DNA of 64,000 bases from Macrostomum lignano (Eukaryota), in contig NIVC01000018.1 of the NCBI GenBank assembly GCA_002269645.1, positions 62,001 through 126,000 on the forward strand, in the 5' to 3' direction. Made by a program: the position numbers and the translations under genes. A model generated the notes under the pieces. The model was given only the letters and a program-made list of their open reading frames with translations, was not told where the DNA came from and did no database searches. This document shows positions 15,841-59,739 of the stretch, piece after piece. Each line of letters starts with the position of its first letter. Positions within the stretch are counted from its first letter, which is position 1.

Positions 15841-15917
15841 GGGGAGGGGGGTTAGTGAGGCATTGAAGTTTTTAGTGGCAGTGTGTGGATTCCTAAGTAG
15901 GCGGTTTTGGTTTCTAC

Positions 15918-36091: not shown

Positions 36092-36106
36092 GTTGCCCTT
36101 GGCAAC
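36092..36106. promoter_or_regulatory. RFX X-box-like palindrome GTTGCCCTTGGCAAC
   Basis: Matches GTNRCC-N(0-3)-RGYAAC; function untested. Confidence 0.4.
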
Positions 36107-37199
36107 AGGTTTTTTATCCTTCCGCCGCATCCGAACGGAAAGTCTGTCTGATTGAAAATAATCAATTTATACCCCATCATATGCTTAATATGCGTTCTTG
36201 ACTACTTGGATATTTAAGGACAGGGCTACTCTCCGTTCGGATGCAGCATGTGAACAGTCTGTTTAGTTTTTAAAAACTTTATTGATAGGCTTTTTCAATT
36301 CGATTTCTTATATTCTGCTCATTCCATTGTGTTTTCTACATGTAGAGCCATCATACATACTAGAATAACTAGGAGGGCCACTCAGCACATTTGCGTGCAA
36401 GCTACTTTCAGTTCAGTAGTAAGTTAAATAGAAGCATTTTAACGTATTTTTAAAGCCAAGGCTCATATTGGCTCTCAAACTCCACACAGATCCTCCACCC
36501 CTGCCCCGCCGTCCAATTTTATTACCTTCCTAGGTTGTTCCAGCCTAAATCTGCCATGTACATTTCAGTGGCTAATGTACATTATAGCTGAACCAATTAG
36601 CAAGCTTGGGCTTCTGAACTTATCAAAGTAATTTCAGCTGCCTTTATTTTTATAAAATAGCTTATGTACTCTTCTTTGCTACTGAACTGGAAGTAGAAAG
36701 CTGTTTACTAAGTATATATGCCTGAGTGGCCCATCTAGTTATTCAAGTACCTGTGGTAATGACTTTTTAATCGTCTATCTGCAGTAAACAAATGAATGTA
36801 CTTTTATCTATTGTGGTTTGTACTTCTATTATAATTTGGCGCTAGCTTCTCTGCAATGCAAGACTAATTAAGTGTTGCACTTTTATCATATTAGCGACCT
36901 TTTTCTATTAATAATCAGCTCAGATTTTATCCAGGGCGTTAACAATTCTCTATATTGTTTTGCTTTTTTATATTATTGAATGCTAATTCCGAGGCAAATG
37001 TTAACTAGCTAGACTTAGATCAGCAACCCATATAGAATCTCTTTGCCTGTTTTCCTTGTTTAAAAGAAATATAAACCTTTTTTAAATTGATTTTCTTTTT
37101 CTGGTAAATGGAGCCGAAGCACTCGCTTGTTGTGCAAAATCTCTACAGTGCTTTGTTTGTATTGCTTTGCCTCAGGTCCAATGAGATTCAGTATAGAGT

Positions 37200-37426
37200 G
37201 CTAGTAGGTAGAATATGATAAAATGTCATTTGCAGGGGGGCTCACAACCATGCAGCGCTGTCAATTGACTTCCTAATCGTCAGGAATGTACTCTGTGTCT
37301 GGGGGAGGGGGGTGGCTTTCATGTCAACTCCCTCATTAGACCAATTTTTGTGCTCAAGCCCCAACAAGCTCAAGCTCGAACCTGAGGCGAGAGTCGGACG
37401 CGTTTGCCACTGAGCTGCTCTGCCTC
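37200..37426 (-). mobile_element. Probable tRNA-derived SINE
   Basis: Minus strand GAGGCAGAGCAGCTCAGTGGC (A-box-like) ... GGTTCGAGC (B-box-like); 3' boundary uncertain. Confidence 0.45.
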
Positions 37427-37529
37427 ATTACTACTTAAAGTAGTAGGTAAATTTATTTTGTAGTGTAGCACTTTATCTCGTTCCAATTCGTCAAACTGTG
37501 TTTAAAAATTCCATTTAAACTTTCGAATT

Positions 37530-37925
37530 GATGAATGATGCTGAGGGAGAATGATGCTGAGAGGGAATGATGCTGAGAGGGAATGATGCTGAGAGGGAAT
37601 GATGCTGAGGGGGAATGATGCTGAGAAAGAATGATGCTGAGGGGGAATGATGCTGAGAGGGAATGATGCTGAGAGGGAATGATGCTGAGAGGGAATGATG
37701 CTGAGAGGGAATGATGCTGAGGGGGAATGATGCTGAGAGGGAATGATGCTGAGGGGGAATGATGCTGAGAGGGAATGATGCTGACGGGGGAATGATGCTG
37801 AGAGGGGATGATGTTGAGCGAGAATGATGCTGAGACGGATTGATGCTGAGGGAGAATGATGCTGAGAGGGACTGGTGCTGAGACGGATTGATGCTGAGGG
37901 AGAATGATGCTGAGAGGGACTGATG
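37530..37925. repeat. 16-bp minisatellite (GAATGATGCTGAGAGG)n, same family as HEATR6 intron 4
   Basis: Same unit as 7288-9830. Confidence 0.93.
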
Positions 37926-38248
37926 CCGAGGCGAAATGAACCTCATGGGGAGTGAAGCTGAGATGGAAGGGGTTCAATTGTATTAATTTTTATTGCTCTA
38001 TGGGATTTTCATTGCAAAGAAATTTTTATGCTCGTACTTACTTGGACTTAATCGTGCAAAAAAGGTTTATATATAAACTTAGTGTATATAAATTTATAAT
38101 TTCGAAGTTGACTGTCAATAATGCGTATCACTTTCTCTCTGTATGCATTTGGTTTATTTTGCCCTCCTGTGAACATCTTTTTCTGTCTACTGCATGCTTT
38201 GCGCAATGTTGTATAGAAGCGCTAGAGGGTTGTCTTGTGTTTTACTAA

Positions 38249-38262
38249 GTTTCCATGACAAT
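38249..38262. promoter_or_regulatory. RFX X-box-like motif GTTTCCATGACAAT
   Basis: One mismatch from GTTTCCATGACAAC; upstream of the small coiled-coil gene. Confidence 0.35.
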
Positions 38263-38934
38263 GCTAGCTAGTTATTGAGACACATCATCTTACGCAGAAG
38301 AGAAAGTTGAGAACACTCTTCAAGAAGCAATTATGTTCGGCTGTGTGACTGGGAGGCTAGCCAAAGCTAGTGCTTTGCGGTTGGCTCACCGTCAGCCCTG
38401 GGGAGGGGGGAGCGTCTCCTCTCGTGTGTGTTGAAATTATAAAACTGCTGGCCCTGGCTGTGAGTAGTGTGCAATTTCCCCAGGGCCAGCTGTGTGCTCC
38501 CGTGTTTGCTACACAATCTTGTCCACGATCTTCTATACACTGTCTACTGCTGTGTATCCAGGTATTTAATTACCTGTCAGGTAGGTTGTTTGATTTGTGG
38601 CGCTTCTCTCTCTCTCTCTGTGTGCGTGTATGTGTTTAATTTTAATCAGAGTGTGCAGACAGTAGGCTTGATCGATCGGGCCTTTCACCCTGGCAAACTC
38701 CTGTGAAGTGAATCGGTTAACTTTATCTAACTTCAACAAGGAACTTCTGAACCTTCTGAACCAAATCATGCAATGAAACCTTATTATGAACAAAGTAGTT
38801 TTTGTCTCAATTGTCAATATTGGTAAAAGTTCCCACTTAAAATATTCAGTTTCATACAGTTCTTGCTCTTTATGAAAAAAGACATCGACATCTAATGGTA
38901 CTGTCAGTGGGGCAAATAACTGTCCTTTCTGAAC

Positions 38935-39855
38935 TTTGTCGGTAACATCTGTTTGTTCATCAGTCGTCGTCGGTAACATCTGTTTGTTCATCAGTCGTCG
39001 TCGGTAACATCTGTTTGTTCATCAGTCGTCGTCGGTAACATCTGTTTGTTCATCAGTCTTCGTCGGTAACACATGTTTGTTCATAAGTCTTCAACAGTAA
39101 CACCTGTTTGTTCTTCAGTCTTCGTCGGTAACATCTGTTTGTTCATCAGTCGTCGTCGGTAACACCTGTTTGTTCATAAGTCTTCAACAGTAACACCTGT
39201 TTGTTCTTCAGTCTTCGTCGGTAACATCTGTTTGTTCATCAGTCGTCGTCGGTAACATCTGTTTGTTCATCAGTCGCCGTCGGTAACATCTGTTAGTTCA
39301 TCAGTCGTCGTCGGTAACATCTGTTTGTTCATCAGTCTTCGTCGGTAACACCTGTTTGTTCATAAGTCTTCAACAGTAACACCTGTTTGTTCTTCAGTCT
39401 TCGTCGGTAACACCTGTTTGTTCATAAGTCTTCAACAGTAACACCTGTTTGTTCTTCAGTCTTCGAAGTAACACCTGTATGTTCATCAGTCTTCGTCGGT
39501 AACACCTGTTTGTTCATCAGCCTTCGTCAGTAACACCTGTTTGTTCATCAGCCTTCGTTGGTAACACCTGTTTGTTCATCAGCCTTCGTCGGTAACACCT
39601 GTTTGTTCATCAGCCTTCGTCAGTAACACCTGTTTGTTCATCAGCCTTCGTTGGTAACACCTGTTTGTTCATCAGCCTTCGTCAGTAACACCTGTTTGTT
39701 CATCAATCTTCGTGGTAGCACCTGTATGTTCATCAGCCTTCGTCAGTAACACCTGTTTGTTCATCAGCCTTCGTCGGTAACACCTGTTTGTTCATCAGCC
39801 TTCGTCAGTAACACCTGTTTGTTCATCAGTCTTTTAATCGTCGTTGGTAACACCT
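38935..39855. repeat. 31-bp minisatellite (GGTAACATCTGTTTGTTCATCAGTCGTCGTC)n
   Basis: Period 31 with variant blocks. Confidence 0.95.
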
Positions 39856-40077
39856 GTTTATTCCGTCCATCTTGGTGCTAGTTTTGTCCATTGGTTTACT
39901 CAACAATTTATTGATGGTTAACAATCATTAATGGACGGTCCTGTTGGTACCTGCTGCTGCTTGTTGACTGCCTTTCCAGTGAATTCCAGATGACTTTCCA
40001 GTGTAAATAGTCATATTGAACTGCACGCATTGCAACTGCAACATTGTAGACGAGCTTTCTGCAACCTGCAGTCGAAA

Positions 40078-41253
40078 ATGCACAGCGAAACAATTCAAGT
40101 AGACGATTGGAAGCCCGTCGACGACAAGTACCTGATGCTGACTAATCCGCGCGAATATCGCAAGGCTCGGATGAAGAACCTGAAGCTGGACAGTGTGCTG
40201 CACAAACAGCTGATGGCCTGGCGTAGCGAAGAGCAGCTGGCTCTTGGCCAGCTTCGATTCGCTAGCAGAGAGGCGGAACAGCAGCGGGAGTCGCTGCGCC
40301 AGCAGCTGCTGTTCAGCCGGGCCACCAGTCTGGCCTGCTTGGAGGCGCAAGCTAACGGCGGCGAGTCGCTCAAGAACCAGCTGGCTCGCCTGCGGCAGAG
40401 GTGAATGCACAAACCACTTCTTGTCTACGAGTATTTGCTTGCAGTCACTATCAGCAAGTACGAGCTGACCATTTGCTACATTCCTGCAGTGCCCTTGTTG
40501 ATCCTTGTAGCAGCATCCGGTAGATTCTCGCTAGCATCTAGTAGATTCTCGCTAGCACTCGGTAGATTCTCGTTAGCATCCGGTAGATTCTCGCCAGCAT
40601 CCGGTAGATTCTTGCTAGCATCCGGTAGATTCTCGCTAGCATCCAGTAGATTCTCGCTAGCACTCGGTAGATTCTCGCTAGCATCCGGTAGGTTCTCGCT
40701 AGCATTCGGTAGATTCTTGCTAGCATCCAGTAGATTATTGCTAGCATCCGGTAGATTCTTGCTAGCATCTGGTAGATTCTCGCTAGCATCCGGTAGATTC
40801 TAATCAGCATCCGGTAGATTCTTATCAGCATCCGGTAGATTCTCGCTAGCATCCGGTAGATTCTAATCAGCATCCGGTAGATTCTAATCAGCATCCGGTA
40901 GATTCTTATCAGCATCCGGTAGATTGTAATAAACATCCGATAGACTCCAATCAGCATCCGGTAGATTCCTTTAGGTTTGAGTAGATTCTGTCAGTATCCG
41001 GGAGATTTAATCTATCAGCCAACCCCGCTTCGACAGCTCGGACATCTACGCCTTGGACTACTCAAAATCGGTTCGGCGTCCCCGCAAGACGGCGCAGCAG
41101 CTGCGCCAGGAGGCGGCCCAGCGCTCGGCGGAGAAACTTGAGACGCAGACCCGAGCCGTGCTGGCGGCGGCTTCCGCCAAGCGCCGTAGCGTTGCCGCCA
41201 ACGACATGGCTAGCAGTCGCAGAGACAGCGAAGGCAGACAGCAGAACGCTTGA
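40078..41253 (+). CDS. Small coiled-coil protein (possibly CCDC190-like); exons 40078-40400 and 41019(or 41037)-41253
   Basis: MHSETIQVDDW...EYRKARMKNLKLDSVLHKQLMAWRSEEQLALGQL...; donor AG|GTGAAT phase 2; both candidate acceptors keep frame into DIYALDYSKSVRRP...QQNA*. Family assignment is weak recall. Confidence 0.7.
40510..40960. repeat. 21-bp minisatellite (GCATCCGGTAGATTCTCGCTA)n (also ~46026-46476 and ~50575-51025)
   Basis: Tandem units in the intron of the coiled-coil gene. Confidence 0.92.
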
Positions 41254-41561
41254 TTGAACGGCGATCGGAGCCCGCGGACCCCTGAATCCACATCTGGACT
41301 GGAAAGCTTTATTGTGTCCTTATTTTTCCATTTGCTTAGTACATATACGAGCGTAGCTGAGTGTACGACTTTTCCAGTCCAGATGTTCAGTTCAATGGTC
41401 CATGTCGTAACATATCGTTTTTTCGCTGAGAACAAAACAAATATACCGGAGCACTTTTTATTCTTATGGCACTTGAGCACTTTCAGCTTTTTTAGAATTT
41501 GATTTCTTGGAAAAAGTTTGTAGTAGTAAAAACGGCTGGATAGATAGATAGATAGATAGCT

Positions 41562-41620
<59 letters not shown>

Positions 41621-41644
41621 TTGATTGATTGATTGATTAATTGG

Positions 41645-41680
<36 letters not shown>

Positions 41681-41833
41681 CTGATTGATTGACTGATTGA
41701 CTGATGGATAGAACTCGCCAAGCCTCCCATTATATCGTGAAGCATCAATGCTGAGTCAAGCCATTCAGAAGACAATTTTCCAAGTTGCAATGAACTTTCA
41801 GCGCGTCTAATTGAAGAAATTGAATAACTTGCT

Positions 41834-43964
41834 ATGGCGGGTCCAGTGGCGCTGGTCAGGCGCCTGCTCGCTCACCTGTGGAGTCTGATGTGGAGAGTTT
41901 GGAATTATTTGGCTAGGTAAGTAAAGTGATAGTCAAACAATTCTTGGTTGAGATGCTCTGGGTTGAGATAACAAAACTCTGGGTTGAGATGCCAAATCTC
42001 TGGGTTGAGATACCAAATCTCTGGGTTGAGATACTAAATCTCTGGTTTGAGTTATCAAATCTCTGAGTTGAGATACCAAATCTATGGGTTCAGATACCAA
42101 ATCTCTGGGTTGAGATACCAAATCTCTGGGTTGAGATACCAAATCTCTGGGTTGAGATACCAAATCTCTGGGTTGAGTTATCAAATCTCTGGGTTGAGGT
42201 ATCAAATCTCTGGGTTCAGATACCAAATCTCTCGGTTGAGATACCAAATCTCTGGGTTGAGATGCCAAATCTCTGGGTTGAGATACCAAATCTCTGGGTT
42301 GAGATACTAAATCTCTGGTTTGAGTTATCAAATCTCTGAGTTGAGATACCAAATCTATGGGTTCAGATACCAAATCTCTGGGTTGAGATACCAAATCTCT
42401 GGGTTGAGATACCAAATCTCTGGGTTGAGATACCAAATCTCTGGGTTGAGTTATCAAATCTCTGGGTTGAGGTATCAAATCTCTGGGTTCAGATACCAAA
42501 TCTCTCGGTTGAGATACCAAATCTCTGGGTTGAGATGCCAAATCTCTGGGTTGAGATATCAAATCTCTGGGTTGAGATATCAGTCTCTGGGTTGAGATAC
42601 CAAATCTCTGGGTTGAGATATCAATCTCTGGGTTGAGATACCAAATCTCTGGGTTGAGATATCAATCTCTGGGTTGAGATGCCAAATCTCTGGGTTGAGA
42701 TATCAAATCTCTGGGTTGAGATATCAGTCTCTGGGTTGAGATACCAAATCTCTGGGTTGAGATATCAATCTCTGGGTTGAGATACCAAATCTCTGGGTTG
42801 AGATATCAATCTCTGGGTTGAGATACCAAATCTCTGGTTTGAGATATCAAATCTCAGATATCAGATATCAGATATCAAATCTAAGGTTTGAGATATCAAA
42901 CTTAAGATATCAAGGTTAAGATTTCAAATCTCTGGGTTGAGATACCAGATCTCTGGGTTGAGATACTAAATCTCTGGGTTTAGATACTAAATCTCTTGGT
43001 TGAGATACCAAATCTCTTGGTTGAGATACCAAATCTCTGGGTTGAGATACCAAATCTCTGGGTTGAGATACTAAATCTCTGGGTTGAGATACTAAATCTC
43101 TTGGTTGAGATAATAAATCTTTCGGTTGAGATACCAAATCTCTGGGTTGAGATACCAAATCTCTGGTTTGAGATATCAAATCTCAGATATCAGATATCAA
43201 ATCTCAGGTTTGAGATATCAAACCTAAGATATCAAGGTTGAGATTTCAAATCTCTGGGTTGAGATACCAAATCTCTGGGTTGAGATACTAAATCTCTGGG
43301 TTGAGATACCAAATCTCTGGGTTAAGATACCAAGTCTCTGGGTTGAGATACTAAATCTTTCGGTTGAGATATCAATCTCTGGGTTGAGATACCAAATCTC
43401 TGGTTTGAGATATCAAACCTAAGATATCAAGGTTGAGATTTCAAATCTCTGGGTTGAGATACTAAATCTCTGAGTTGAGATACTAAATCTTTCGGTTGAG
43501 ATACCAAATCTCTGAGATACCAGCTCTGGGTTAAGCTTAAATCTCGAGTTATAACCCGTTCTCCCTGATGAATTCCAACCCTAGTCTCAACGACAACGAC
43601 TGGTTGGCGGCGACATCAAACGAGAATCGCCGGGAGCAGTTGTTCAATGCCAGCATTCAGTCGGAGTCGCTCAGCCTGCCCTGGACAATGGAGATGGCCC
43701 AGCTGCCCGGCGGTACGTTTGACCCTGCATCACTTTCTTGTGCAGCTTATTTAGTCACTTTATTTATCGCCGTCGCCTTCTTACAGAGGACACCTTAGAG
43801 TTTACCTGCGTCTACAATCTGGCACCCGACAGCGGCCTGAGCGACGTGCAAATCGACCGGATTGGCGTCCTGCGCTCTGTCGGTGTTGCCGAGTTTTACA
43901 CCGACTGCCTGGGTAACTGGCCAGCCTTCCTCACGGACTCCCGGGTTGCTGCTCTCGACTGGAG
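41834..43964 (+). CDS. CGRRF1-like exons 1-3, truncated copy 1 (41834-41916, 43585-43712, 43787-43964)
   Basis: Identical to exons 1-3 of the intact copy but with no RING exon in the unit. Confidence 0.7.
41945..43545. repeat. 21-bp minisatellite (AAATCTCTGGGTTGAGATACC)n (also ~47460-48670 and ~52015-53615)
   Basis: Tandem units; the SQPRDLV ORFs are repeat artefacts. Confidence 0.95.
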
Positions 43965-43969
43965 GTGGG

Positions 43970-45448
43970 TGACTGACTGACTGACTGACTGACTGACTGA
44001 CTGACTGACTGACTGACTGACTGACTGACTGACTGACTGACTGACTGACTGACTGACTGACTGACTGACTGACTGACTGACTGACTGACTGACTGACTGA
44101 CTGACTGACTGACTGACTGACTGACTGACTGACTGACTGACTGACTGACTGACTGACTGACTGACTGACTGACTGACTGACTGACTGACTGACTGACTGA
44201 CTGACTGACTGACTGACTGACTGACTGACTGACTGACTGACTGACTGACTGACTGACTGACTGACTGACTGACTGACTGACTGACTGACTGACTGACTGA
44301 CTGACTGACTGACTGACTGACTGACTGACTGACTGACTGACTGACTGACTGACTGACTGACTGACTGACTGACTGACTGACTGACTGACTGACTGACTGA
44401 CTGACTGACTGACTGACTGACTGACTGACTGACTGACTGACTGACTGACTGACTGACTGACTGACTGACTGACTGACTGACTGACTGACTGACTGACTGA
44501 CTGACTGACTGACTGACTGACTGACTGACTGACTGACTGACTGACTGACTGACTGACTGACTGACTGACTGACTGACTGACTGACTGACTGCCTGACTGA
44601 CTGACTGACTGACTGACTGACTGACTGACTGACTGACTGACTGACTGACTGACTGACTGACTGACTGACTGACTGACTGACTGACTGACTGACTGACTGA
44701 CTGACTGACTGACTGACTGACTGACTGACTGACTGACTGACTGACTGACTGACTGACTGACTGACTGACTGACTGACTGACTGACTGACTGACTGACTGA
44801 CTGACTGACTGACTGACTGACTGACTGACTGACTGACTGACTGACTGACTGACTGACTGACTGACTGACTGACTGACTGACTGACTGACTGACTGACTGA
44901 CTGACTGACTGACTGACTGACTGACTGACTGACTGACTGACTGACTGACTGACTGACTGACTGACTGACTGACTGACTGACTGACTGACTGACTGACTGA
45001 CTGACTGACTGACTGACTGACTGACTGACTGACTGACTGACTGACTGACTGACTGACTGACTGACTGACTGACTGACTGACTGACTGACTGACTGACTGA
45101 CTGACTGACTGACTGACTGACTGACTGACTGACTGACTGACTGACTGACTGACTGACTGACTGACTGACTGACTGACTGACTGACTGACTGACTGACTGA
45201 CTGACTGACTGACTGACTGACTGACTGACTGACTGACTGACTGACTGACTGACTGACTGACTGACTGACTGACTGACTGACTGACTGACTGACTGACTGA
45301 CTGACTGACTGACTGACTGACTGACTGACTGACTGACTGACTGACTGACTGACTGACTGACTGACTGACTGACTGACTGACTGACTGACTGACTGACTGA
45401 CTGACTGACTGACTGACTGACTGACTGACTGACTGACTGACTGACTGA
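43970..45448. repeat. (GACT)n microsatellite, ~1.48 kb
   Basis: Almost pure tetranucleotide with one GCCT interruption; starts 5 nt after the donor. Confidence 0.98.
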
Positions 45449-47077
45449 GTCACGACTCTAGGGCTCTATGAATCTATGACTCTCTGATTCTCTGATTCTG
45501 ATTCTATGACTCTATGACTCTCTGATTCTATCTATGAGTCTATGACTCTATGACTCTCTGATTCTATCTATGACTCTATGAATCTGACTCTATGACTCTT
45601 TGACTCTATGACTCTCTGATTCTATGACTCTATGACTCTATGAATCTGACTCTATGACTCTTTGACTCTATGACTCTCTGATTCTATGACTCTATGACTC
45701 TATGACTCTCTGATTCTATCTATGACTCTATGACTCTATGACTCTCTGATTCTATCTATGACTCTATGACTCTATGACTCTCTGATTCTATCTATGACTC
45801 TATGACTCTCTGATTCTATCTATGACTCTATGACTCTCTGATTCTATCTATGACTCTATGATTTTATGACTCTCTGATTCTATGACTCTCTGATTATATG
45901 ACTCTCTGCGGCAGAGGTGAATGCACAAACCACTTCTTGTCTACGAGTATTTGCTTGCAGTCACTATCAGCAAGTACGAGCTGACCATTTGCTACATTCC
46001 TGCAGTGCCCTTGTTGATCCTTGTAGCAGCATCCGGTAGATTCTCGCTAGCATCTAGTAGATTCTCGCTAGCACTCGGTAGATTCTCGTTAGCATCCGGT
46101 AGATTCTCGCCAGCATCCGGTAGATTCTTGCTAGCATCCGGTAGATTCTCGCTAGCATCCAGTAGATTCTCGCTAGCACTCGGTAGATTCTCGCTAGCAT
46201 CCGGTAGGTTCTCGCTAGCATTCGGTAGATTCTTGCTAGCATCCAGTAGATTATTGCTAGCATCCGGTAGATTCTTGCTAGCATCTGGTAGATTCTCGCT
46301 AGCATCCGGTAGATTCTAATCAGCATCCGGTAGATTCTTATCAGCATCCGGTAGATTCTCGCTAGCATCCGGTAGATTCTAATCAGCATCCGGTAGATTC
46401 TAATCAGCATCCGGTAGATTCTTATCAGCATCCGGTAGATTGTAATAAACATCCGATAGACTCCAATCAGCATCCGGTAGATTCCTTTAGGTTTGAGTAG
46501 ATTCTGTCAGTATCCGGGAGATTTAATCTATCAGCCAACCCCGCTTCGACAGCTCGGACATCTACGCCTTGGACTACTCAAAATCGGTTCGGCGTCCCCG
46601 CAAGACGGCGCAGCAGCTGCGCCAGGAGGCGGCCCAGCGCTCGGCGGAGAAACTTGAGACGCAGACCCGAGCCGTGCTGGCGGCGGCTTCCGCCAAGCGC
46701 CGTAGCGTTGCCGCCAACGACATGGCTAGCAGTCGCAGAGACAGCGAAGGCAGACAGCAGAACGCTTGATTGAACGGCGATCGGAGCCCGCGGACCCCTG
46801 AATCCACATCTGGACTGGAAAGCTTTATTGTGTCCTTATTTTTCCATTTGCTTAGTACATATACGAGCGTAGCTGAGTGTACGACTTTTCCAGTCCAGAT
46901 GTTCAGTTCAATGGTCCATGTCGTAACATATCGTTTTTTCGCTGAGAACAAAACAAATATACCGGAGCACTTTTTATTCTTATGGCACTTGAGCACTTTC
47001 AGCTTTTTTAGAATTTGATTTCTTGGAAAAAGTTTGTAGTAGTAAAAACGGCTGGATAGATAGATAGATAGATAGCT

Positions 47078-47136
<59 letters not shown>

Positions 47137-47160
47137 TTGATTGATTGATTGATTAATTGG

Positions 47161-47196
<36 letters not shown>

Positions 47197-47349
47197 CTGA
47201 TTGATTGACTGATTGACTGATGGATAGAACTCGCCAAGCCTCCCATTATATCGTGAAGCATCAATGCTGAGTCAAGCCATTCAGAAGACAATTTTCCAAG
47301 TTGCAATGAACTTTCAGCGCGTCTAATTGAAGAAATTGAATAACTTGCT

Positions 47350-49089
47350 ATGGCGGGTCCAGTGGCGCTGGTCAGGCGCCTGCTCGCTCACCTGTGGAGT
47401 CTGATGTGGAGAGTTTGGAATTATTTGGCTAGGTAAGTAAAGTGATAGTCAAACAATTCTTGGTTGAGATGCTCTGGGTTGAGATAACAAAACTCTGGGT
47501 TGAGATGCCAAATCTCTGGGTTGAGATACCAAATCTCTGGGTTGAGATACTAAATCTCTGGTTTGAGTTATCAAATCTCTGAGTTGAGATACCAAATCTA
47601 TGGGTTCAGATACCAAATCTCTGGGTTGAGATACCAAATCTCTGGGTTGAGATACCAAATCTCTGGGTTGAGATACCAAATCTCTGGGTTGAGTTATCAA
47701 ATCTCTGGGTTGAGGTATCAAATCTCTGGGTTCAGATACCAAATCTCTCGGTTGAGATACCAAATCTCTGGGTTGAGATGCCAAATCTCTGGGTTGAGAT
47801 ACCAAATCTCTGGGTTGAGATACTAAATCTCTGGTTTGAGTTATCAAATCTCTGAGTTGAGATACCAAATCTATGGGTTCAGATACCAAATCTCTGGGTT
47901 GAGATACCAAATCTCTGGGTTGAGATACCAAATCTCTGGGTTGAGATACCAAATCTCTGGGTTGAGTTATCAAATCTCTGGGTTGAGGTATCAAATCTCT
48001 GGGTTCAGATACCAAATCTCTCGGTTGAGATACCAAATCTCTGGGTTGAGATGCCAAATCTCTGGGTTGAGATATCAAATCTCTGGGTTGAGATATCAGT
48101 CTCTGGGTTGAGATACCAAATCTCTGGGTTGAGATATCAATCTCTGGGTTGAGATACCAAATCTCTGGGTTGAGATATCAATCTCTGGGTTGAGATGCCA
48201 AATCTCTGGGTTGAGATATCAAATCTCTGGGTTGAGATATCAGTCTCTGGGTTGAGATACCAAATCTCTGGGTTGAGATATCAATCTCTGGGTTGAGATA
48301 CCAAATCTCTGGGTTGAGATATCAATCTCTGGGTTGAGATACCAAATCTCTGGTTTGAGATATCAAATCTCAGATATCAGATATCAGATATCAAATCTAA
48401 GGTTTGAGATATCAAACTTAAGATATCAAGGTTAAGATTTCAAATCTCTGGGTTGAGATACCAGATCTCTGGGTTGAGATACTAAATCTCTGGGTTTAGA
48501 TACTAAATCTCTTGGTTGAGATACCAAATCTCTTGGTTGAGATACCAAATCTCTGGGTTGAGATACCAAATCTCTGGGTTGAGATACTAAATCTCTGGGT
48601 TGAGATACTAAATCTTTCGGTTGAGATACCAAATCTCTGAGATACCAGCTCTGGGTTAAGCTTAAATCTCGAGTTATAACCCGTTCTCCCTGATGAATTC
48701 CAACCCTAGTCTCAACGACAACGACTGGTTGGCGGCGACATCAAACGAGAATCGCCGGGAGCAGTTGTTCAATGCCAGCATTCAGTCGGAGTCGCTCAGC
48801 CTGCCCTGGACAATGGAGATGGCCCAGCTGCCCGGCGGTACGTTTGACCCTGCATCACTTTCTTGTGCAGCTTATTTAGTCACTTTATTTATCGCCGTCG
48901 CCTTCTTACAGAGGACACCTTAGAGTTTACCTGCGTCTACAATCTGGCACCCGACAGCGGCCTGAGCGACGTGCAAATCGACCGGATTGGCGTCCTGCGC
49001 TCTGTCGGTGTTGCCGAGTTTTACACCGACTGCCTGGGTAACTGGCCAGCCTTCCTCACGGACTCCCGGGTTGCTGCTCTCGACTGGAG
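47350..49089 (+). CDS. CGRRF1-like exons 1-3, truncated copy 2 (47350-47432, 48710-48837, 48912-49089)
   Basis: As copy 1. Confidence 0.7.
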
Positions 49090-49094
49090 GTGGG

Positions 49095-49997
49095 TGACTG
49101 ACTGACTGACTGACTGACTGACTGACTGACTGACTGACTGACTGACTGACTGACTGACTGACTGACTGACTGACTGACTGACTGACTGACTGACTGACTG
49201 ACTGACTGACTGACTGACTGACTGACTGACTGACTGACTGACTGACTGACTGACTGACTGACTGACTGACTGACTGACTGACTGACTGACTGACTGACTG
49301 ACTGACTGACTGACTGACTGACTGACTGACTGACTGACTGACTGACTGACTGCCTGCCTGACTGACTGACTGACTGACTGACTGACTGACTGACTGACTG
49401 ACTGACTGACTGACTGACTGACTGACTGACTGACTGACTGACTGACTGACTGACTGACTGACTGACTGACTGACTGACTGACTGACTGACTGACTGACTG
49501 ACTGACTGACTGACTGACTGACTGACTGACTGACTGACTGACTGACTGACTGACTGACTGACTGACTGACTGACTGACTGACTGACTGACTGACTGACTG
49601 ACTGACTGACTGACTGACTGACTGACTGACTGACTGACTGACTGACTGACTGACTGACTGACTGACTGACTGACTGACTGACTGACTGACTGACTGACTG
49701 ACTGACTGACTGACTGACTGACTGACTGACTGACTGACTGACTGACTGACTGACTGACTGACTGACTGACTGACTGACTGACTGACTGACTGACTGACTG
49801 ACTGACTGACTGACTGACTGACTGACTGACTGACTGACTGACTGACTGACTGACTGACTGACTGACTGACTGACTGACTGACTGACTGACTGACTGACTG
49901 ACTGACTGACTGACTGACTGACTGACTGACTGACTGACTGACTGACTGACTGACTGACTGACTGACTGACTGACTGACTGACTGACTGACTGACTGA
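49095..49997. repeat. (GACT)n microsatellite, ~0.9 kb
   Basis: Seen directly; GCCTGCCT interruption ~49352. Confidence 0.98.
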
Positions 49998-51626
49998 GTC
50001 ACGACTCTAGGGCTCTATGAATCTATGACTCTCTGATTCTCTGATTCTGATTCTATGACTCTATGACTCTCTGATTCTATCTATGAGTCTATGACTCTAT
50101 GACTCTCTGATTCTATCTATGACTCTATGAATCTGACTCTATGACTCTTTGACTCTATGACTCTCTGATTCTATGACTCTATGACTCTATGAATCTGACT
50201 CTATGACTCTTTGACTCTATGACTCTCTGATTCTATGACTCTATGACTCTATGACTCTCTGATTCTATCTATGACTCTATGACTCTATGACTCTCTGATT
50301 CTATCTATGACTCTATGACTCTATGACTCTCTGATTCTATCTATGACTCTATGACTCTCTGATTCTATCTATGACTCTATGACTCTCTGATTCTATCTAT
50401 GACTCTATGATTTTATGACTCTCTGATTCTATGACTCTCTGATTCTATGACTCTCTGCGGCAGAGGTGAATGCACAAACCACTTCTTGTCTACGAGTATT
50501 TGCTTGCAGTCACTATCAGCAAGTACGAGCTGACCATTTGCTACATTCCTGCAGTGCCCTTGTTGATCCTTGTAGCAGCATCCGGTAGATTCTCGCTAGC
50601 ATCTAGTAGATTCTCGCTAGCACTCGGTAGATTCTCGTTAGCATCCGGTAGATTCTCGCCAGCATCCGGTAGATTCTTGCTAGCATCCGGTAGATTCTCG
50701 CTAGCATCCAGTAGATTCTCGCTAGCACTCGGTAGATTCTCGCTAGCATCCGGTAGGTTCTCGCTAGCATTCGGTAGATTCTTGCTAGCATCCAGTAGAT
50801 TATTGCTAGCATCCGGTAGATTCTTGCTAGCATCTGGTAGATTCTCGCTAGCATCCGGTAGATTCTAATCAGCATCCGGTAGATTCTTATCAGCATCCGG
50901 TAGATTCTCGCTAGCATCCGGTAGATTCTAATCAGCATCCGGTAGATTCTAATCAGCATCCGGTAGATTCTTATCAGCATCCGGTAGATTGTAATAAACA
51001 TCCGATAGACTCCAATCAGCATCCGGTAGATTCCTTTAGGTTTGAGTAGATTCTGTCAGTATCCGGGAGATTTAATCTATCAGCCAACCCCGCTTCGACA
51101 GCTCGGACATCTACGCCTTGGACTACTCAAAATCGGTTCGGCGTCCCCGCAAGACGGCGCAGCAGCTGCGCCAGGAGGCGGCCCAGCGCTCGGCGGAGAA
51201 ACTTGAGACGCAGACCCGAGCCGTGCTGGCGGCGGCTTCCGCCAAGCGCCGTAGCGTTGCCGCCAACGACATGGCTAGCAGTCGCAGAGACAGCGAAGGC
51301 AGACAGCAGAACGCTTGATTGAACGGCGATCGGAGCCCGCGGACCCCTGAATCCACATCTGGACTGGAAAGCTTTATTGTGTCCTTATTTTTCCATTTGC
51401 TTAGTACATATACGAGCGTAGCTGAGTGTACGACTTTTCCAGTCCAGATGTTCAGTTCAATGGTCCATGTCGTAACATATCGTTTTTTCGCTGAGAACAA
51501 AACAAATATACCGGAGCACTTTTTATTCTTATGGCACTTGAGCACTTTCAGCTTTTTTAGAATTTGATTTCTTGGAAAAAGTTTGTAGTAGTAAAAACGG
51601 CTGGATAGATAGATAGATAGATAGCT

Positions 51627-51689
<63 letters not shown>

Positions 51690-51713
51690 TTGATTGATTG
51701 ATTGATTAATTGG

Positions 51714-51749
<36 letters not shown>

Positions 51750-51902
51750 CTGATTGATTGACTGATTGACTGATGGATAGAACTCGCCAAGCCTCCCATT
51801 ATATCGTGAAGCATCAATGCTGAGTCAAGCCATTCAGAAGACAATTTTCCAAGTTGCAATGAACTTTCAGCGCGTCTAATTGAAGAAATTGAATAACTTG
51901 CT

Positions 51903-54900
51903 ATGGCGGGTCCAGTGGCGCTGGTCAGGCGCCTGCTCGCTCACCTGTGGAGTCTGATGTGGAGAGTTTGGAATTATTTGGCTAGGTAAGTAAAGTGATA
52001 GTCAAACAATTCTTGGTTGAGATGCTCTGGGTTGAGATAACAAAACTCTGGGTTGAGATGCCAAATCTCTGGGTTGAGATACCAAATCTCTGGGTTGAGA
52101 TACTAAATCTCTGGTTTGAGTTATCAAATCTCTGAGTTGAGATACCAAATCTATGGGTTCAGATACCAAATCTCTGGGTTGAGATACCAAATCTCTGGGT
52201 TGAGATACCAAATCTCTGGGTTGAGATACCAAATCTCTGGGTTGAGTTATCAAATCTCTGGGTTGAGGTATCAAATCTCTGGGTTCAGATACCAAATCTC
52301 TCGGTTGAGATACCAAATCTCTGGGTTGAGATGCCAAATCTCTGGGTTGAGATACCAAATCTCTGGGTTGAGATACTAAATCTCTGGTTTGAGTTATCAA
52401 ATCTCTGAGTTGAGATACCAAATCTATGGGTTCAGATACCAAATCTCTGGGTTGAGATACCAAAATCTCTGGGTTGAGATACCAAATCTCTGGGTTGAGA
52501 TACCAAATCTCTGGGTTGAGTTATCAAATCTCTGGGTTGAGGTATCAAATCTCTGGGTTCAGATACCAAATCTCTCGGTTGAGATACCAAATCTCTGGGT
52601 TGAGATGCCAAATCTCTGGGTTGAGATATCAAATCTCTGGGTTGAGATATCAGTCTCTGGGTTGAGATACCAAATCTCTGGGTTGAGATATCAATCTCTG
52701 GGTTGAGATACCAAATCTCTGGGTTGAGATATCAATCTCTGGGTTGAGATGCCAAATCTCTGGGTTGAGATATCAAATCTCTGGGTTGAGATATCAGTCT
52801 CTGGGTTGAGATACCAAATCTCTGGTTGAGATATCAATCTCTGGGTTGAGATACCAAATCTCTGGGTTGAGATATCAATCTCTGGGTTGAGATACCAAAT
52901 CTCTGGTTTGAGATATCAAATCTCAGATATCAGATATCAGATATCAAATCTAAGGTTTGAGATATCAAACTTAAGATATCAAGGTTAAGATTTCAAATCT
53001 CTGGGTTGAGATACCAGATCTCTGGGTTGAGATACTAAATCTCTGGGTTTAGATACTAAATCTCTTGGTTGAGATACCAAATCTCTTGGTTGAGATACCA
53101 AATCTCTGGGTTGAGATACCAAATCTCTGGGTTGAGATACTAAATCTCTGGGTTGAGATACTAAATCTCTTGGTTGAGATAATAAATCTTTCGGTTGAGA
53201 TACCAAATCTCTGGGTTGAGATACCAAATCTCTGGTTTGAGATATCAAATCTCAGATATCAGATATCAAATCTCAGGTTTGAGATATCAAACCTAAGATA
53301 TCAAGGTTGAGATTTCAAATCTCTGGGTTGAGATACCAAATCTCTGGGTTGAGATACTAAATCTCTGGGTTGAGATACCAAATCTCTGGGTTAAGATACC
53401 AAGTCTCTGGGTTGAGATACTAAATCTTTCGGTTGAGATATCAATCTCTGGGTTGAGATACCAAATCTCTGGTTTGAGATATCAAACCTAAGATATCAAG
53501 GTTGAGATTTCAAATCTCTGGGTTGAGATACTAAATCTCTGAGTTGAGATACTAAATCTTTCGGTTGAGATACCAAATCTCTGAGATACCAGCTCTGGGT
53601 TAAGCTTAAATCTCGAGTTATAACCCGTTCTCCCTGATGAATTCCAACCCTAGTCTCAACGACAACGACTGGTTGGCGGCGACATCAAACGAGAATCGCC
53701 GGGAGCAGTTGTTCAATGCCAGCATTCAGTCGGAGTCGCTCAGCCTGCCCTGGACAATGGAGATGGCCCAGCTGCCCGGCGGTACGTTTGACCCTGCATC
53801 ACTTTCTTGTGCAGCTTATTTAGTCACTTTATTTATCGCCGTCGCCTTCTTACAGAGGACACCTTAGAGTTTACCTGCGTCTACAATCTGGCACCCGACA
53901 GCGGCCTGAGCGACGTGCAAATCGACCGGATTGGCGTCCTGCGCTCTGTCGGTGTTGCCGAGTTTTACACCGACTGCCTGGGTAACTGGCCAGCCTTCCT
54001 CACGGACTCCCGGGTTGCTGCTCTCGACTGGAGGTGGGTGACTGACTGACTGACTGACTGACTGACTGACTGACTGACTGACTGACTGACTGACTGACTG
54101 ACTGACTGACTGACTGACTGACTGACTGACTGACTGACTGACTGACTGACTGACTGACTGACTGACTGACTGACTGACTGACTGACTGACTGACTGACTG
54201 ACTGACTGACTGACTGACTGACTGACTGACTGACTGACTGACTGCCTGACTGACTGACTGACTGACTGACTGACTGACTGACTGACTGACTGACTGACTG
54301 ACTGACTGACTGACTGACTGACTGACTGACTGACTGACTGACTGACTGACTGACTGACTGACTGACTGACTGACTGACTGACTGACTGACTGACTGACTG
54401 ACTGACTGACTGACTGACTGACTGACTGACTGACTGACTGACTGACTGACTGACTGACTGACTGACTGACTGACTGACTGACTGACTGACTGACTGACTG
54501 ACTGACTGACTGACTGACTGACTGACTGACTGACTGACTGACTGACTGACTGACTGACTGACTGACTGACTGACTGACTGACTGACTGACTGACTGACTG
54601 ACTGACTGACTGACTGACTGACTGACTGACTGACTGACTGACTGACTGACTGACTGACTGACTGCCTGACTGACTGACTGACTGACTGACTGACTGACTG
54701 ACTGACTGACTGACTGACTGACTGACTGACTGACTGACTGACTGACTGACTGACTGACTGACTGACTGACTGACTGACTGACTGACTGACTGACTGACTG
54801 ACTGACTGACTGACTGACTGACTGACTGACTGACTGACTGACTGACTGACTGACTGACTGACTGACTGACTGACTGACTGACTGAGTCACGACTCTAGGG

Positions 54901-56101
54901 CTCTATGAATCTATGACTCTCTGATTCTCTGATTCTGATTCTATGACTCTATGACTCTCTGATTCTATCTATGAGTCTATGACTCTATGACTCTCTGATT
55001 CTATCTATGACTCTATGAATCTGACTCTATGACTCTTTGACTCTATGACTCTCTGATTCTATGACTCTATGACTCTATGAATCTGACTCTATGACTCTTT
55101 GACTCTATGACTCTCTGATTCTATGACTCTATGACTCTATGACTCTCTGATTCTATCTATGACTCTATGACTCTATGACTCTCTGATTCTATCTATGACT
55201 CTATGACTCTATGACTCTCTGATTCTATCTATGACTCTATGACTCTCTGATTCTATCTATGACTCTATGATTTTATGACTCTCTGATTCTATGACTCTCT
55301 GATTCTATGACTCTCTGATTCTATGACTATATGACTCTATGACTCTATCTTTCTCTGATTCTATGACTCTGACTCTATGACTCTATGACTCTCTGATTCT
55401 ATGACTCTGACTCTATGACTCTTTGACTCTATGACTCTTTGACTCTATGACTCTATGATTCTATGACTCACTGACTCACTGCCTGGCACATCCACCCCAG
55501 CGAGTCATCCAGCGGTGTGGTCGCGGCCCGACTGCCGAACGCCAGCGAGGGCCTGTCCTACTCGCCTCAGTCCTACCCTCTGGTCGCATTCGCATTCGGC
55601 TCGTACACTTTCACCGGAAGCGAAGCCTCAACTGGAAGTGACGCTGACGACAGCGAATCTGGGGCCGGAAGCGCGGAGGCTACCGCCGGAAGACATCGGC
55701 AGCGCAGCTTCCGATGCTGCCTGGCCGCGGTGCTCCACGTGCGCCTGTTGCCAGAGCAGCCGGCCAGTCAGATCATGCGCAGGTTCTTCTTGCGCTGGCC
55801 GCCAGAGCTGGAGGAGTGTGCGGCGTGGCAGCCGCACGTGTTGGAGCTGCGGCCGTACTTCAGCACCGCTGATTCTTCATCTTCGCCATCATCGTCGGAT
55901 GCTGACGGCAGCTGCGTTGTCTGCCAGTCGGCTCCGGCCAGCATCCTGCTGCTGCCCTGTCGGCACGCTTGCGTCTGCGCCGACTGCGCCGCCCGGCTGC
56001 CTTCGGATCTGTGCCCGCTGTGCCGCCGGCTCGCGCACTCCCGCCTGGCGCTTCCAGTCCGAGTGCAGCCGCCGCCGCCGGAGCCGCCGCCTGTTCATTG
56101 A
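51903..56101 (+). CDS. CGRRF1: CGRRF1-like C3HC4 RING E3 ligase; exons 51903-51985, 53654-53781, 53856-54033, 55501-56101
   Basis: Phase-consistent introns; hydrophobic N-terminus; QSYPLVAF, AVLHV, CVVCQSAPASILLLPCRHACVCADC...CPLCR resemble CGRRF1 (YPLVAL, SVIHI, CVVCQNGTVNWVLLPCRHTCLCDGC...CPMCR); AATAAA at 56138-56143. Confidence 0.75.
54039..54885. repeat. (GACT)n microsatellite, ~0.85 kb
   Basis: Seen directly; GCCT interruptions ~54244 and ~54664. Confidence 0.98.
54900..55480. repeat. TCTATGAC/TCTGATTC-based low-complexity array (shorter versions at ~45460-45905 and ~50010-50454)
   Basis: Seen directly; contains the duplication breakpoint. Confidence 0.9.
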
Positions 56102-56254
56102 TTGGCGCTGGTTTTTTTGGTTTCGAAAAATATCGGTAATAAAACGCTATTTTTACTACTTGCGCATGTAAGTAGTTATGCAGTTATTAAAGAGGCTGGT
56201 GCGCTTAGTGCGTATATTCGCTTTGATCTGTGTTTGGTCAGAATTTTGTAGTAA

Positions 56255-56540
56255 GGGTGGTAGCCTAGTGGTCAGAGCGTTGGACTCACGACTTGAAGGT
56301 CGGGGGTTCGATTCTCGACCCACTCGGAACAATTTGTGTCCTTGAGCAAGACACTTAAATCTGCATTGCTTCAGTTCACCCAGAGCTGTAAAATGGGTGC
56401 CAGCATTAGCTGGGATAATTGAGGGTGTGTGACGACCCCCCAGTCCTTGGACTGAACAGCCGTACGCAGCGTCAGATGCGCCGCGCAATAGCAGCGGCTG
56501 AGTTGTATCAGTAGTGGGTAAAGTGAATGACATTGTACTG
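56255..56540 (+). mobile_element. tRNA-derived CORE-type SINE
   Basis: A-box TAGCCTAGTGG (56261), B-box GGTTCGATTC (56305), then GTGTCCTTGAGCAAGACACTTAA...CTTCAGTTCACCCAGAGCTGTAAAATGGG aligning to the MIR/CORE domain; 3' end uncertain. Confidence 0.75.
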
Positions 56541-57219: not shown

Positions 57220-57655
57220 CGCGGATGAGGAGAGGAGAGCGGATGAGGAGAGGAGAGAGCGGATGATGAGAGGAGAGAGCGGATGATTACAGAGGAGAGA
57301 GCGGATGAGATGGGAGAGAGCGGATGAGAAGGAAGAGAGTGGATGAGAAGGGAGAGAGCGGATGAGAAGGGAGAGAGTGGATGAGATGAGAGAGAGCAGA
57401 TGAGAAGGGAGAGAGCGGATGAGAAGGAAGAGAGTGGATGAGAAGGAAGAGAGCGGATGAGAAGGGAGAGAGCGGATGAGAAGGGAGAGAGTGGATGAGA
57501 TGGGAAAGAGCGGATGAGAAGAGAGAGAGCGGATGAGAAGGGAGAGAGCGGATGAGAAGGGAGAGAGCGGATGAGAAGGGAGAGAGCGGATGAGAAGGGA
57601 GAGAGCGGATGAGAGGGAAGAGAGCGGATGAGAAGAGAGAGCGGATGAAAAGGAG
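57220..57655. repeat. 19-bp purine-rich minisatellite (GGAGAGAGCGGATGAGAAG)n
   Basis: Period 19. Confidence 0.93.
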
Positions 57656-57752
57656 ATAGAGTGGACTAGAGCGGGGGAGAGCTTGAACCTGTGAGGAGTA
57701 CAAGGGTGCTAAAACTGACTTTCCAAGCAGCATGCGGGCTTCAAGATGGCGA

Positions 57753-57861
<109 letters not shown>

Positions 57862-58374
57862 TAATGAGATGACAAGAAGCAGTCAAGGGTGTCAGATGAT
57901 AATGAAGATTGAATGCTGAGAGTCGGAGTCGCCGAGTCGATGTGCCAAGTCTGCATGCTCATCCCTTCAAAATTGGGTTTGGTAGGAGCATAAATGTACA
58001 TCACGATCCAGCATTGTGCAGAGGTTCGGCCTGAGATTTGTTCATGAATCGGTATTTCATCTGATTTTTTTCACAGTCTAATAGCAATACGTAGAATGCG
58101 CTGTAGTGTGATTATTATAAGTATGAGAAAAGCCGATCCGAGCGACCGGGTCGCAGCGGGGGAAGCCATAAAACAATTTTGCCTCAGCTTCCGATTAGGC
58201 TGCGATCAATTATTAACTCGCCTGAATGAACCGCGGCTTCATCAGCCAGAATCCTGCGTGGCTTAGTTAGAAATACTCTCTCGGGATCGTCTCGTGTGCA
58301 GTAGGACCTGCCAGTCGCTACGTACGCTGTCATTTACTGTAGCGACTTTCTTTAGCTGCCTGTGTCTGCTATAT

Positions 58375-59025
58375 CGGTAGACAGCGGATGACTATTGGTA
58401 GACAGCGGATGACTATTGGTAGGCAGCGGATGACTATTGGTAGGCAGCGGATGACTATTGGTAGAGAGCGGATGACTATTGGTAGACAGCGGATGACTAT
58501 TGGTAGACAGCGGATGACTATTGGTAGACAGCGGATGACTATTGGTAGAGAGCGGATGACTATTGGTAGACAGCGGATGACTATTGGTAGACAGCGGATG
58601 ACTATTGGTAGACAGCGGATGACTATTGGTAGACAGCGGATGACTATTGGTAGACAGCGGATGACTATTGGTAGACAGCGGATGATAATCGGTAGGGATC
58701 GGATGAGAATCAGTAGAGAGCGGATGAGAATCAGTAGAGAACGGATGAGAATCGGTAGAGAGCGGATGAGTATCGGTAGAGATCGGATGAGAATCGGTAG
58801 AGAGCGGATGAGAATCAGTAGAGAGCGGATGAGAATCCGTAGAGATCGGATGAGAATCGGTAGAGATCGGATGAGAATCGGTAGAGATCGGATGAGAATC
58901 GGTAGAGATCGGATGAGAATCGGTAGAGATCGGATGAGAATCGGTAGAGAGCGGATGATAATCAGTAGAGATCGGATGAGAATCGGTAGAGAGCGGGTGA
59001 GAATCGGGTAGAGAGCGGATGATAA
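58375..59025. repeat. 21-bp minisatellite (GTAGACAGCGGATGACTATTG grading to GTAGAGATCGGATGAGAATCG)
   Basis: Two variant blocks. Confidence 0.95.
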
Positions 59026-59739
59026 TCTGATAAAAGAGGCCAATAAAGCCCCACACTGAAAAGATTCGCCAGGCAAGTCAATACCAAAGTCAGGCACAAC
59101 CAAAGGCGACTCGCAAAACTTTTCAGTTGCCCTGCGCCCCCCCCCCCCACTATAGCGCATAAACAGAAATGCTGTCTTAGCCTAACCTGACCTGCTTTTA
59201 GAAGCAGATGCGGACGCAGATACGCGAAGCTAAGGGAGGTGAAATCTGTCCAGATGACTTGAACCGGTGGCTGGGGGGGTGGTGGGGAAGGCAGCCGCAA
59301 TAAACACACAGAAGCAGAAAGCCAAACTATAAAGCAATCAATCAGAACGAACTGGGATACGGGCCGAGGGAGAACCGCGAGAGGATGGGGGGAGGGGGGG
59401 GGAGATTTTCCCTAGCGGCCTGCCCTCGGCGCACTGCAGATCCCGCCTCCCTCAACTGTTTCTTTCTGTTCCCCTTTTCGCCGCAAGCTGCTGGCAGCCA
59501 TCACCGGGATGAAGGTTATTATTTATGCATCCGAGTGATACGCTATTGTATGGCATAGCTATTGGAAGACAGGTACTCGTAGGTATAAACTTGGCCCGAA
59601 TTTTGGGGGCAAGGCAGCTCAGTGGTAACCAAGTCCATCCACTATGGCTGAACCTTGAGGCGCAGAGAGCTGAGAGAGTGTACATTGCGTGAGAATGAAA
59701 AAGAAAGTCGGGGCCGCTGTCAGTGGTGTTTGTATTTTG

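Follow-up and report, generated by a model that had tools for sequence, protein, structure and literature searches.

A young tandem amplification in one subgenomic copy of a Macrostomum lignano gene pair, with two probable in-frame RING-less fusion genes

The DNA considered here is a 64-kb window (positions 62001-126000) of contig NIVC01000018.1, assembly GCA_002269645.1, of the flatworm Macrostomum lignano, and all coordinates are those of this window unless another sequence is named. Two neighbouring genes on the same strand are its main subject, an upstream coiled-coil gene (gene A) and a downstream gene encoding a RING protein (gene B). Self-BLAST of the window, combined with direct reading to delimit the copies, showed that parts of both genes lie in three head-to-tail units of 4.5-5.5 kb each, spanning positions 40390-55314 (Table 1). 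The left end of the repeat unit lies 11 nucleotides (nt) before the end of gene A exon 1 and the right end lies inside gene B intron 3. Exon 1 of gene A is therefore present once and exon 2 three times, in copies of identical sequence; exons 1-3 of gene B are likewise present as three identical copies, followed by a single exon 4.

Gene A encodes a product of 185 amino acids (aa) when the exon 2 acceptor at 41019 is used. An alternative acceptor lies 18 nt downstream, at 41037, and is used in annotated models; it yields a product of 179 aa, which corresponds to UniProt entry A0A1I8I3W6. UniProt names this entry CFAP97, and the UniProt protein names are the sole source of that designation. In a Pfam search, gene A gave no significant match and no match to the CFAP97 model, the only hit being a sub-threshold one to JHY (E = 0.007-0.018).

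Most of the repeat unit consists of satellite sequence, namely a 21-mer array in the A intron, a second 21-mer array in B intron 1, a (TGAC)n array and a (GACTCTAT)n array. The differences between copies are confined to these arrays, together with a few insertions or deletions and single-nucleotide polymorphisms (SNPs) within them. The (TGAC)n array contains 370, 226 and 212 units in copies 1, 2 and 3, respectively, while the 21-mer array of B intron 1 contains 73, 55 and 73. Two changes account for the smaller length of copy 2: 391 bp are deleted from its 21-mer array, and its (TGAC)n array is reduced. Outside the satellites, four segments with a total length of 1,400 bp each occur three times with 0 differences among the copies. 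The first 629 bp of the unit, including a 457-bp minisatellite, are also identical in 3/3 copies. A 21-bp ‘register shift’ between copies that appeared in a MAFFT alignment was rejected as an alignment artefact, given that these 629 bp are the same in all three.

Direct reading of the two internal junctions gave the same sequence, ...TATGACTCT joined to CTGCGGCAGAGgtgaat. The junction 26-mer TGACTCTCTGCGGCAGAGGTGAATGC has exactly 2 occurrences, compared with 0 expected by chance from shuffled sequence. The trinucleotide CTG is common to the intact right breakpoint at 55314/55315 (...GACTCT/CTGATT) and the left breakpoint (...GCTCGC/CTGCGG). This 3-nt microhomology is compatible with end joining or template switching, though on its own it is weak evidence for either. 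A SNP located 10 nt upstream tells the two junctions apart, with A at 45896 and C at 50445. The original prediction had proposed a tandem triplication with these unit limits, 11 nt before the end of A exon 1 and inside B intron 3, and with two identical junctions carrying CTG microhomology; the three units found by self-BLAST and the 26-mer found exactly twice confirmed this to the base.

The arrangement of the exons has consequences for the reading frame. Exon 1 of gene A, exon 1 of gene B and exon 3 of gene B all end in phase 2. Because both boundaries are in phase 2, B exon 3 can be joined in frame to A exon 2 of the next copy. The predicted joins, from 43964 to 46535 or 46553 and from 49089 to 51084 or 51102, leave open frames of 207 or 201 aa, depending on the acceptor, that contain no RING. 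Each predicted chimera would consist of B residues 1-130 followed by the last 71 (201-aa form) or 77 (207-aa form) residues of A, with the peptide ...VAALDWS(QPRFDS)SDIYALDYSK...QQNA ending at A’s own stop. The chimeric introns measure 2,588 and 2,012 nt. Since both exon sets are identical, the derived proteins of chimeric genes 1 and 2 are identical as well. Both parental genes remain intact at the edges of the array, gene A as exon 1 with the copy-1 exon 2, and gene B as copy 3 with exon 4. The internal copies keep all sequence from 1.44 kb upstream of B’s ATG through B exon 3.

A good acceptor-like site, aactttcag/CG, is present at 41793-41801, 33 nt upstream of B’s ATG. This could be a candidate spliced-leader trans-splice site; in the event of co-transcription of A and B, expression of the internal copies might not require a separate promoter.

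Table 1. Positions of the genes, repeat copies, junctions and other mapped features in the window, with the splice junctions discussed in the text
Feature	Position	Strand	Description
Repeat copy 1	40390-45905	+	5516 bp (self-BLAST); A exon-1 tail and donor, A intron with 21-mer satellite, A exon 2 and 3' end, intergenic region, B exons 1-3, most of B intron 3 with (TGAC)370 and (GACTCTAT)n arrays
Repeat copy 2	45906-50454	+	4549 bp (self-BLAST)
Repeat copy 3	50455-55314	+	4860 bp; runs uninterrupted into the remainder of B intron 3
Junction 1	45899-45924	+	B intron-3 8-mer array joined to last 11 nt of A exon 1; CTG microhomology
Junction 2	50448-50473	+	Same sequence as junction 1
Gene A exon 1	40078-40400	+	Single copy; ends in phase 2; last 11 nt (40390-40400) open the repeat unit
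Gene A exon 2, copy 1 (parental)	41019-41253	+	Stop codon 41251-41253
Gene B exons 1-3 in copy 1	41834-41916, 43585-43712, 43787-43964	+	
Intact gene B	51903-56101	+	329 aa; exons 51903-51985, 53654-53781, 53856-54033, 55501-56101
Gene B exon 4	55501-56101	+	Single copy; encodes residues 131-329 including the RING; AATAAA at 56138
Chimeric gene 1 (predicted)	41834-46769	+	B exons 1-3 of copy 1, then A exon 2 of copy 2 (46553 or 46535 to 46769)
Chimeric gene 2 (predicted)	47350-51318	+	B exons 47350-47432, 48710-48837, 48912-49089, then A exon 2 of copy 3
Chimeric gene 2, acceptor exon (predicted)	51102 or 51084 to 51318	+	A exon 2 of copy 3
Predicted chimeric splice junction			...CTCGACTGGAG/CTCGGACATC (short acceptor); ...CTCGACTGGAG/CCAACCCCGC (long acceptor)
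Native A splice junction			...CGGCAGAG/CTCGGACATC
Native B splice junction			...GACTGGAG/CGAGTCATCC
Predicted exon 3-exon 2 cassette-repeat junction			...GACTGGAG/TCTCAACGAC
LTR remnant, gag zinc knuckle	28253-28807	-	Open reading frame
LTR remnant, reverse transcriptase	26371-28152	-	Open reading frame
LTR remnant, RNase H	25205-26143	-	Open reading frame
LTR remnant, integrase C-terminal domain	23774-24859	-	Open reading frame

We compared the predicted chimeras with the public annotation. The record for NIVC01000018.1:103903-128101 matches window positions 41903-64000 at 22,098/22,098 bases. Upstream of gene B, this NCBI record calls two genes with 201-residue products, at positions 1-4867 and 5448-9416 of the annotated locus. 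The corresponding window limits are (<=41903)-46769 and 47350-51318, the first gene running off the start of the locus. These limits correspond to the ATG of B exon 1 and to the A exon 2 stop codon of the following copy. B exons 1-3 contribute 389 nt and the short form of A exon 2 contributes 217 nt, together a coding sequence (CDS) of 606 nt that encodes exactly 201 aa; the annotated products were matched to the predicted chimeras by length and coordinates only. The original prediction had claimed that B exon 3 can be joined to A exon 2 in frame, with the peptide given above and loss of the RING, and that two chimeric genes result from this join. The join is upheld by the exon phases, and the two genes by the public calls, whose 201 residues are the length of the short-acceptor chimera.

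The annotated assembly, Mlig_3_7, was made from the inbred DV1 line (Wudarski et al. 2017, PMC5730564). Its GenBank annotation is the ‘coregenes’ subset of a genome-guided transcriptome based on RNA sequencing (RNA-seq), which was built with STAR, StringTie and TACO together with de novo transcripts mapped by BLAT; TBONE cut the models at trans-splice and poly(A) signals, and TransDecoder called the open reading frames (ORFs) (PMC5730564). Because the annotation is derived from a transcriptome, the 201-aa models imply RNA support, and the annotation provides good but indirect support for expression of the chimeras.

The A-B pair is found at two other loci in Mlig_3_7, on NIVC01001180.1 (L001) and NIVC01000722.1 (L003/L004). 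Both are collinear with the window, L001 aligning with positions 33389-40820 at ~97.5% identity, and both list PNP_UDP_1 as the upstream neighbour. Each of the three subgenomic loci has an annotated 329-aa gene B model. The four satellite families of the window recur at L001 and at L003/L004, with the unit in single copy, and the junction sequence was not found at either. Non-satellite sequence diverges from the window by 2.88% at L001 and by 2.73% at L003/L004. The subgenomes S, L1 and L2 show a SNP divergence of 1.9-2.4% (PMC10733133), and the values obtained here fit this three-subgenome structure. As the other two loci have one copy and no junction, the amplification postdates the subgenome split and affected one subgenome only. 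The 0 differences in 1,400 bp further imply that its age is at most a small fraction of the subgenome divergence, although gene conversion could also have kept the copies identical. The idea that the tandem copies are misplaced subgenomic haplovariants was ruled out, since the three versions are on separate contigs at ~2.8% divergence and the tandem copies are identical.

The interpretation that we favour, and consider probable, is that one of the three subgenomic copies underwent a very recent segmental amplification, which yielded two in-frame RING-less fusion genes. We are highly confident that the duplication exists and less certain that the exact copy number is three. In the proposed sequence of events, one non-homologous tandem duplication, assisted by the CTG microhomology, would have joined the 8-mer satellite of B intron 3 to A exon 1. 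The identity of the two junctions implies that the junction formed once, and a second step would have reused it for the third copy, either by unequal exchange between copies or by re-replication. Each internal junction would then set the B upstream region and exons 1-3 before the acceptor, terminal exon and 3' end of gene A. A transcript from an internal B start would continue from the exon-3 donor through the rest of intron 3 and the 11-nt exon-1 remnant, which has a donor without an acceptor, and then through the A intron and acceptor to the A terminal exon and 3' end. Judging from this anatomy, splicing of B exon 3 to A exon 2 would be the expected default because A exon 2 presents the first acceptor met and the phases match. 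Nonsense-mediated decay is not expected, as the stop is in the last exon. The chimeras are probably newborn fusion genes that are neutral or mildly deleterious, without an evolved function yet.

Several observations weigh against this interpretation. The junction and the copy number rest on one PacBio assembly of a neopolyploid, and this assembly has mis-collapsed or expanded regions, with subgenome-chimeric scaffolds representing 36% of its length (PMC10733133). The annotation pipeline joined ORF-bearing transcripts without a poly(A) signal to downstream poly(A) transcripts across repetitive gaps <10 kb (PMC5730564), and the annotated chimeras might in principle stem from this merging rule instead of from junction reads. 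The chimera was absent from the results of protein database searches, in which a chimera query returned the two parents only. Finally, no canonical AATAAA was found 3' of A exon 2, where only the variants AATATA and AGTAAA occur.

The reliance on a single assembly raises the possibility that the array is an assembly artefact or has the wrong copy number, the genome truly containing one copy, two copies or a number that differs among the pooled worms, expanded by the assembler across the (TGAC)n and minisatellite arrays. Long perfect satellites bound and fill the unit, one (TGAC)n array extending over 1.5 kb, which would favour such an error. However, the junction unites unrelated sequences, a satellite and an exon, and assemblers do not create such joins without consensus reads. 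The junction is also present twice, in versions distinguished by the SNP at 45896 and 50445, and the copies contain arrays of unlike lengths. The three subgenomic variants are each on their own contig at ~2.8% divergence, and the annotated chimeric models map linearly only with the duplication present. We consider an assembly artefact unlikely.

It is also conceivable that the duplication is real and that the chimeric models are annotation artefacts, with no fusion protein made. In that case the RNAs could be truncated or read-through, or all B starts could splice to exon 4, and the effect of the duplication would be a change in B dosage or the production of B isoforms with a repeated exon 2-3 cassette. 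The merging of transcripts across repetitive gaps by the pipeline is consistent with this possibility, as is the fact that exon 3 can also be joined in frame to exon 4 or to the exon 2 that follows in the next copy; the ragged 5'-partial models of A exon 2 at L001 and L003 show that the models are imperfect. Against it, a product of exactly 201 aa, from the B ATG to the A stop, requires the exact exon-3 donor and the short acceptor, and the same short acceptor is used in independent 179-aa gene A models. In addition, A exon 2, with its 3' end, offers the first acceptor after each internal exon-3 donor. A merge origin is disfavoured because ragged fragments are unlikely to yield an exact 606-nt CDS, and we regard this explanation as quite improbable.

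The gene A models at the other loci deserve description. At L001 8933-9133 and L003 9119-9328, the annotation represents gene A solely by a CDS that is partial at its 5' end, encodes 66 or 69 aa and begins a few codons within exon 2. Exon 1 of gene A is intact at L001, with 100% identity to exon 1 of the window. The partial models may be a multi-mapping artefact, or much A exon 2 RNA may come from transcripts that lack exon 1. A further entry, UniProt A0A1I8FJN5 (512 aa, ‘C2 domain-containing’), looks like a frameshifted read-through model, gene A then gene B, and appears not to be a true fusion of the tandem-duplication kind.

The nature of gene B determines what the chimeras would retain and what they would lose. 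The gene B protein derived from the window is identical to PAA94018.1 / BOX15_Mlig009283g1. Its top protein database match is M. lignano BOX15_Mlig009484g1, at 98% identity over 329 aa, and PAA94018.1 falls in the 90% cluster of that protein. Neither Mlig009283 nor Mlig009484 gave a match in the paper search. Between subgenomic copies, gene B shows 13 synonymous and 5 non-synonymous differences; the resulting ratio of non-synonymous to synonymous substitution rates (dN/dS) of 0.125 indicates that it is a constrained coding gene. A zf-C3HC4_3 RING (PF13920) was identified by Pfam at residues 266-306 of 329 with E = 8e-13.

Gene B had been labelled ‘CGRRF1-like’, with a hydrophobic N-terminus. 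CGRRF1 is a RING E3 ligase anchored in the endoplasmic reticulum, and an N-terminal transmembrane anchor is counted among its features. An exhaustive phmmer search placed all gene B matches outside Macrostomum within residues ~170-327, almost all of these at ~245 or beyond, and detected no relatives of residues 1-240 outside M. lignano. A cnidarian CGRRF1-like protein (P0041, 324 aa) and its full-length relative P0021 are among the RING matches. Gene B resembles these two proteins in size (329 aa compared with 324-343 aa) and in having a C-terminal zf-C3HC4_3 RING at the same relative position, with ~40% identity across the RING. The alignment to P0041, however, covers the RING only, and profile-profile comparison with hhalign matched only residues 243-316. 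Beyond residues ~243-320, which comprise the RING and a short lead-in, gene B thus shows no detectable similarity to CGRRF1, and the label did not hold up in either the phmmer or the profile-profile comparison. The profiles were shallow, comprising 3 and 7 sequences, and a distant relationship between gene B and CGRRF1 may exist; at the level of sequence comparison, membership of gene B in the CGRRF1 family is not established.

The description of the N-terminus had to be revised as well. In contrast to CGRRF1, gene B has no transmembrane-grade N-terminal segment that could be found in a Kyte-Doolittle analysis with a 19-residue window, the maximum being 1.34, at a site away from the N-terminus, compared with 3.28 for the N-terminus of P0041. 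Single-sequence AlphaFold2 predicted a confident helix at residues 3-30, which carries R9, R10, H14 and R21. The model had a mean predicted local distance difference test score (pLDDT) of 40 and was uninformative beyond this N-terminal helix. The predicted N-terminus is an arginine-containing amphipathic helix, too little hydrophobic for a membrane anchor.

The original prediction suggested that the chimeras are possibly dominant-negative decoys of the intact E3 ligase; more broadly, they could be new genes with a function in regulating it. They retain B residues 1-130 and drop the catalytic RING, and the two copies are identical and intact, with the stop in the last exon. With zero substitutions, however, the copies have had too little time to show visible signs of selection. 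For B, neither a domain nor a partner nor a substrate is known; its residues 1-240 lack detectable relatives outside M. lignano, and the single-sequence structural model, at a mean pLDDT of 40, is uninformative. Moreover, the usual fate of newborn chimeric genes is loss (PMC5460883). A functional role of this kind is therefore highly improbable in our view.

Exons 2 and 3 of gene B form a symmetric 306-nt cassette, phase 2 to phase 2, at 43585-43964, 48710-49089 and 53654-54033. Because the two exons total 306 nt, the frame is kept when B exon 3 is joined to the following copy’s B exon 2, a join that the original prediction had overlooked, and B exon 3 is in frame with exon 4 from any copy. 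Read-through transcripts could in consequence encode predicted RING proteins in which a 102-residue segment is repeated two or three times. An extended possibility, which we hold to be very unlikely, is that the array is unstable and copy-number-variable and that fusion proteins are produced and modulate the intact RING ligase, for instance through titration of its partners; in a variant of this idea, the products would be ligase isoforms with repeated N-terminal modules. If the array were unstable in this way, the dosage of the fusion genes would shift with each unequal exchange, and a newborn regulatory gene would be present in an animal in which transgenesis is possible. If cassette read-through occurred, the ligase would exist in isoforms with an internally repeated N-terminal module.

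Other features of the window were also recorded. A long terminal repeat (LTR) retrotransposon remnant occupies ~23774-28807 on the minus strand and is split into separate ORFs (Table 1). Minisatellites are extremely dense at 1-16319 and 57221-64000, with units of 15 to 44 nt and arrays of <=3.4 kb. Arrays of the 16-mer GAATGATGCTGAGRGG are present at 7287-9831 and 37533-37930, and also at L001 ~5608-6042. Directly 3' of the RING gene, at 56245-56330, lies a stretch resembling transfer RNA (tRNA), GGTGGTAGCCTAGTGGTCAGAGCG...GGTTCGATTCTCGACCC. Neither ARAGORN nor Rfam calls it, and it resembles the head of a short interspersed nuclear element (SINE) derived from a tRNA. The tRNA-like stretch occurs at the matching position in L001 (~12603) and L003 (~13932), and its presence at the same position in all three loci indicates that it is older than the subgenome divergence. 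A 627-aa ORF at 11790-13673 (+) has weak HEAT-repeat matches and overlaps the 25-mer satellite at 12810-13431; it could be either a real coding exon or a satellite-driven ORF.

The A-B locus displays the features of a tandem-duplication fusion gene, that is, a novel junction, breakpoints in two genes, an open frame and an ancestral state that is still present. A somatic fusion of this type, KIAA1549-BRAF, occurs in human tumours. As in that case, a tandem duplication fuses 5' exons in frame to the 3' exons of a neighbour on the same strand. The M. lignano event differs in being germline and part of the reference assembly, in removing the catalytic domain and not a regulatory one, and in having no known phenotype. 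The locus is also similar to the chimeric genes formed by tandem duplication that have been described previously (PMC5460883). The shared properties are a head-to-tail duplication with breakpoints in two same-strand neighbours, the joining of the downstream gene’s 5' end to the upstream gene’s 3' end, parental genes that are intact at the edges, and an origin that is young and lineage-specific. In contrast to those cases, the M. lignano array contains three copies instead of two, and hence two identical chimeras; it lies in one subgenome of a neopolyploid flatworm, with one breakpoint in an intronic satellite; and its expression is known through annotation, whereas that of the published cases was followed as measured RNA-seq changes.

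Given a well-established mechanism, gene models that GenBank already contains and no sign of a function, the finding is an added example and not a new principle. As an example, it is an unusually clean gene birth by tandem duplication, of effectively zero age and with exact breakpoints. The ancestral state is kept twice in the same genome, the parents are intact, and the two in-frame fusions are identical. M. lignano is amenable to RNA interference, in situ hybridisation and transgenesis, so that the fate and effect of a newborn fusion gene can be tested directly in this animal. The locus also illustrates that the satellite-rich introns of the M. lignano genome can seed structural change.

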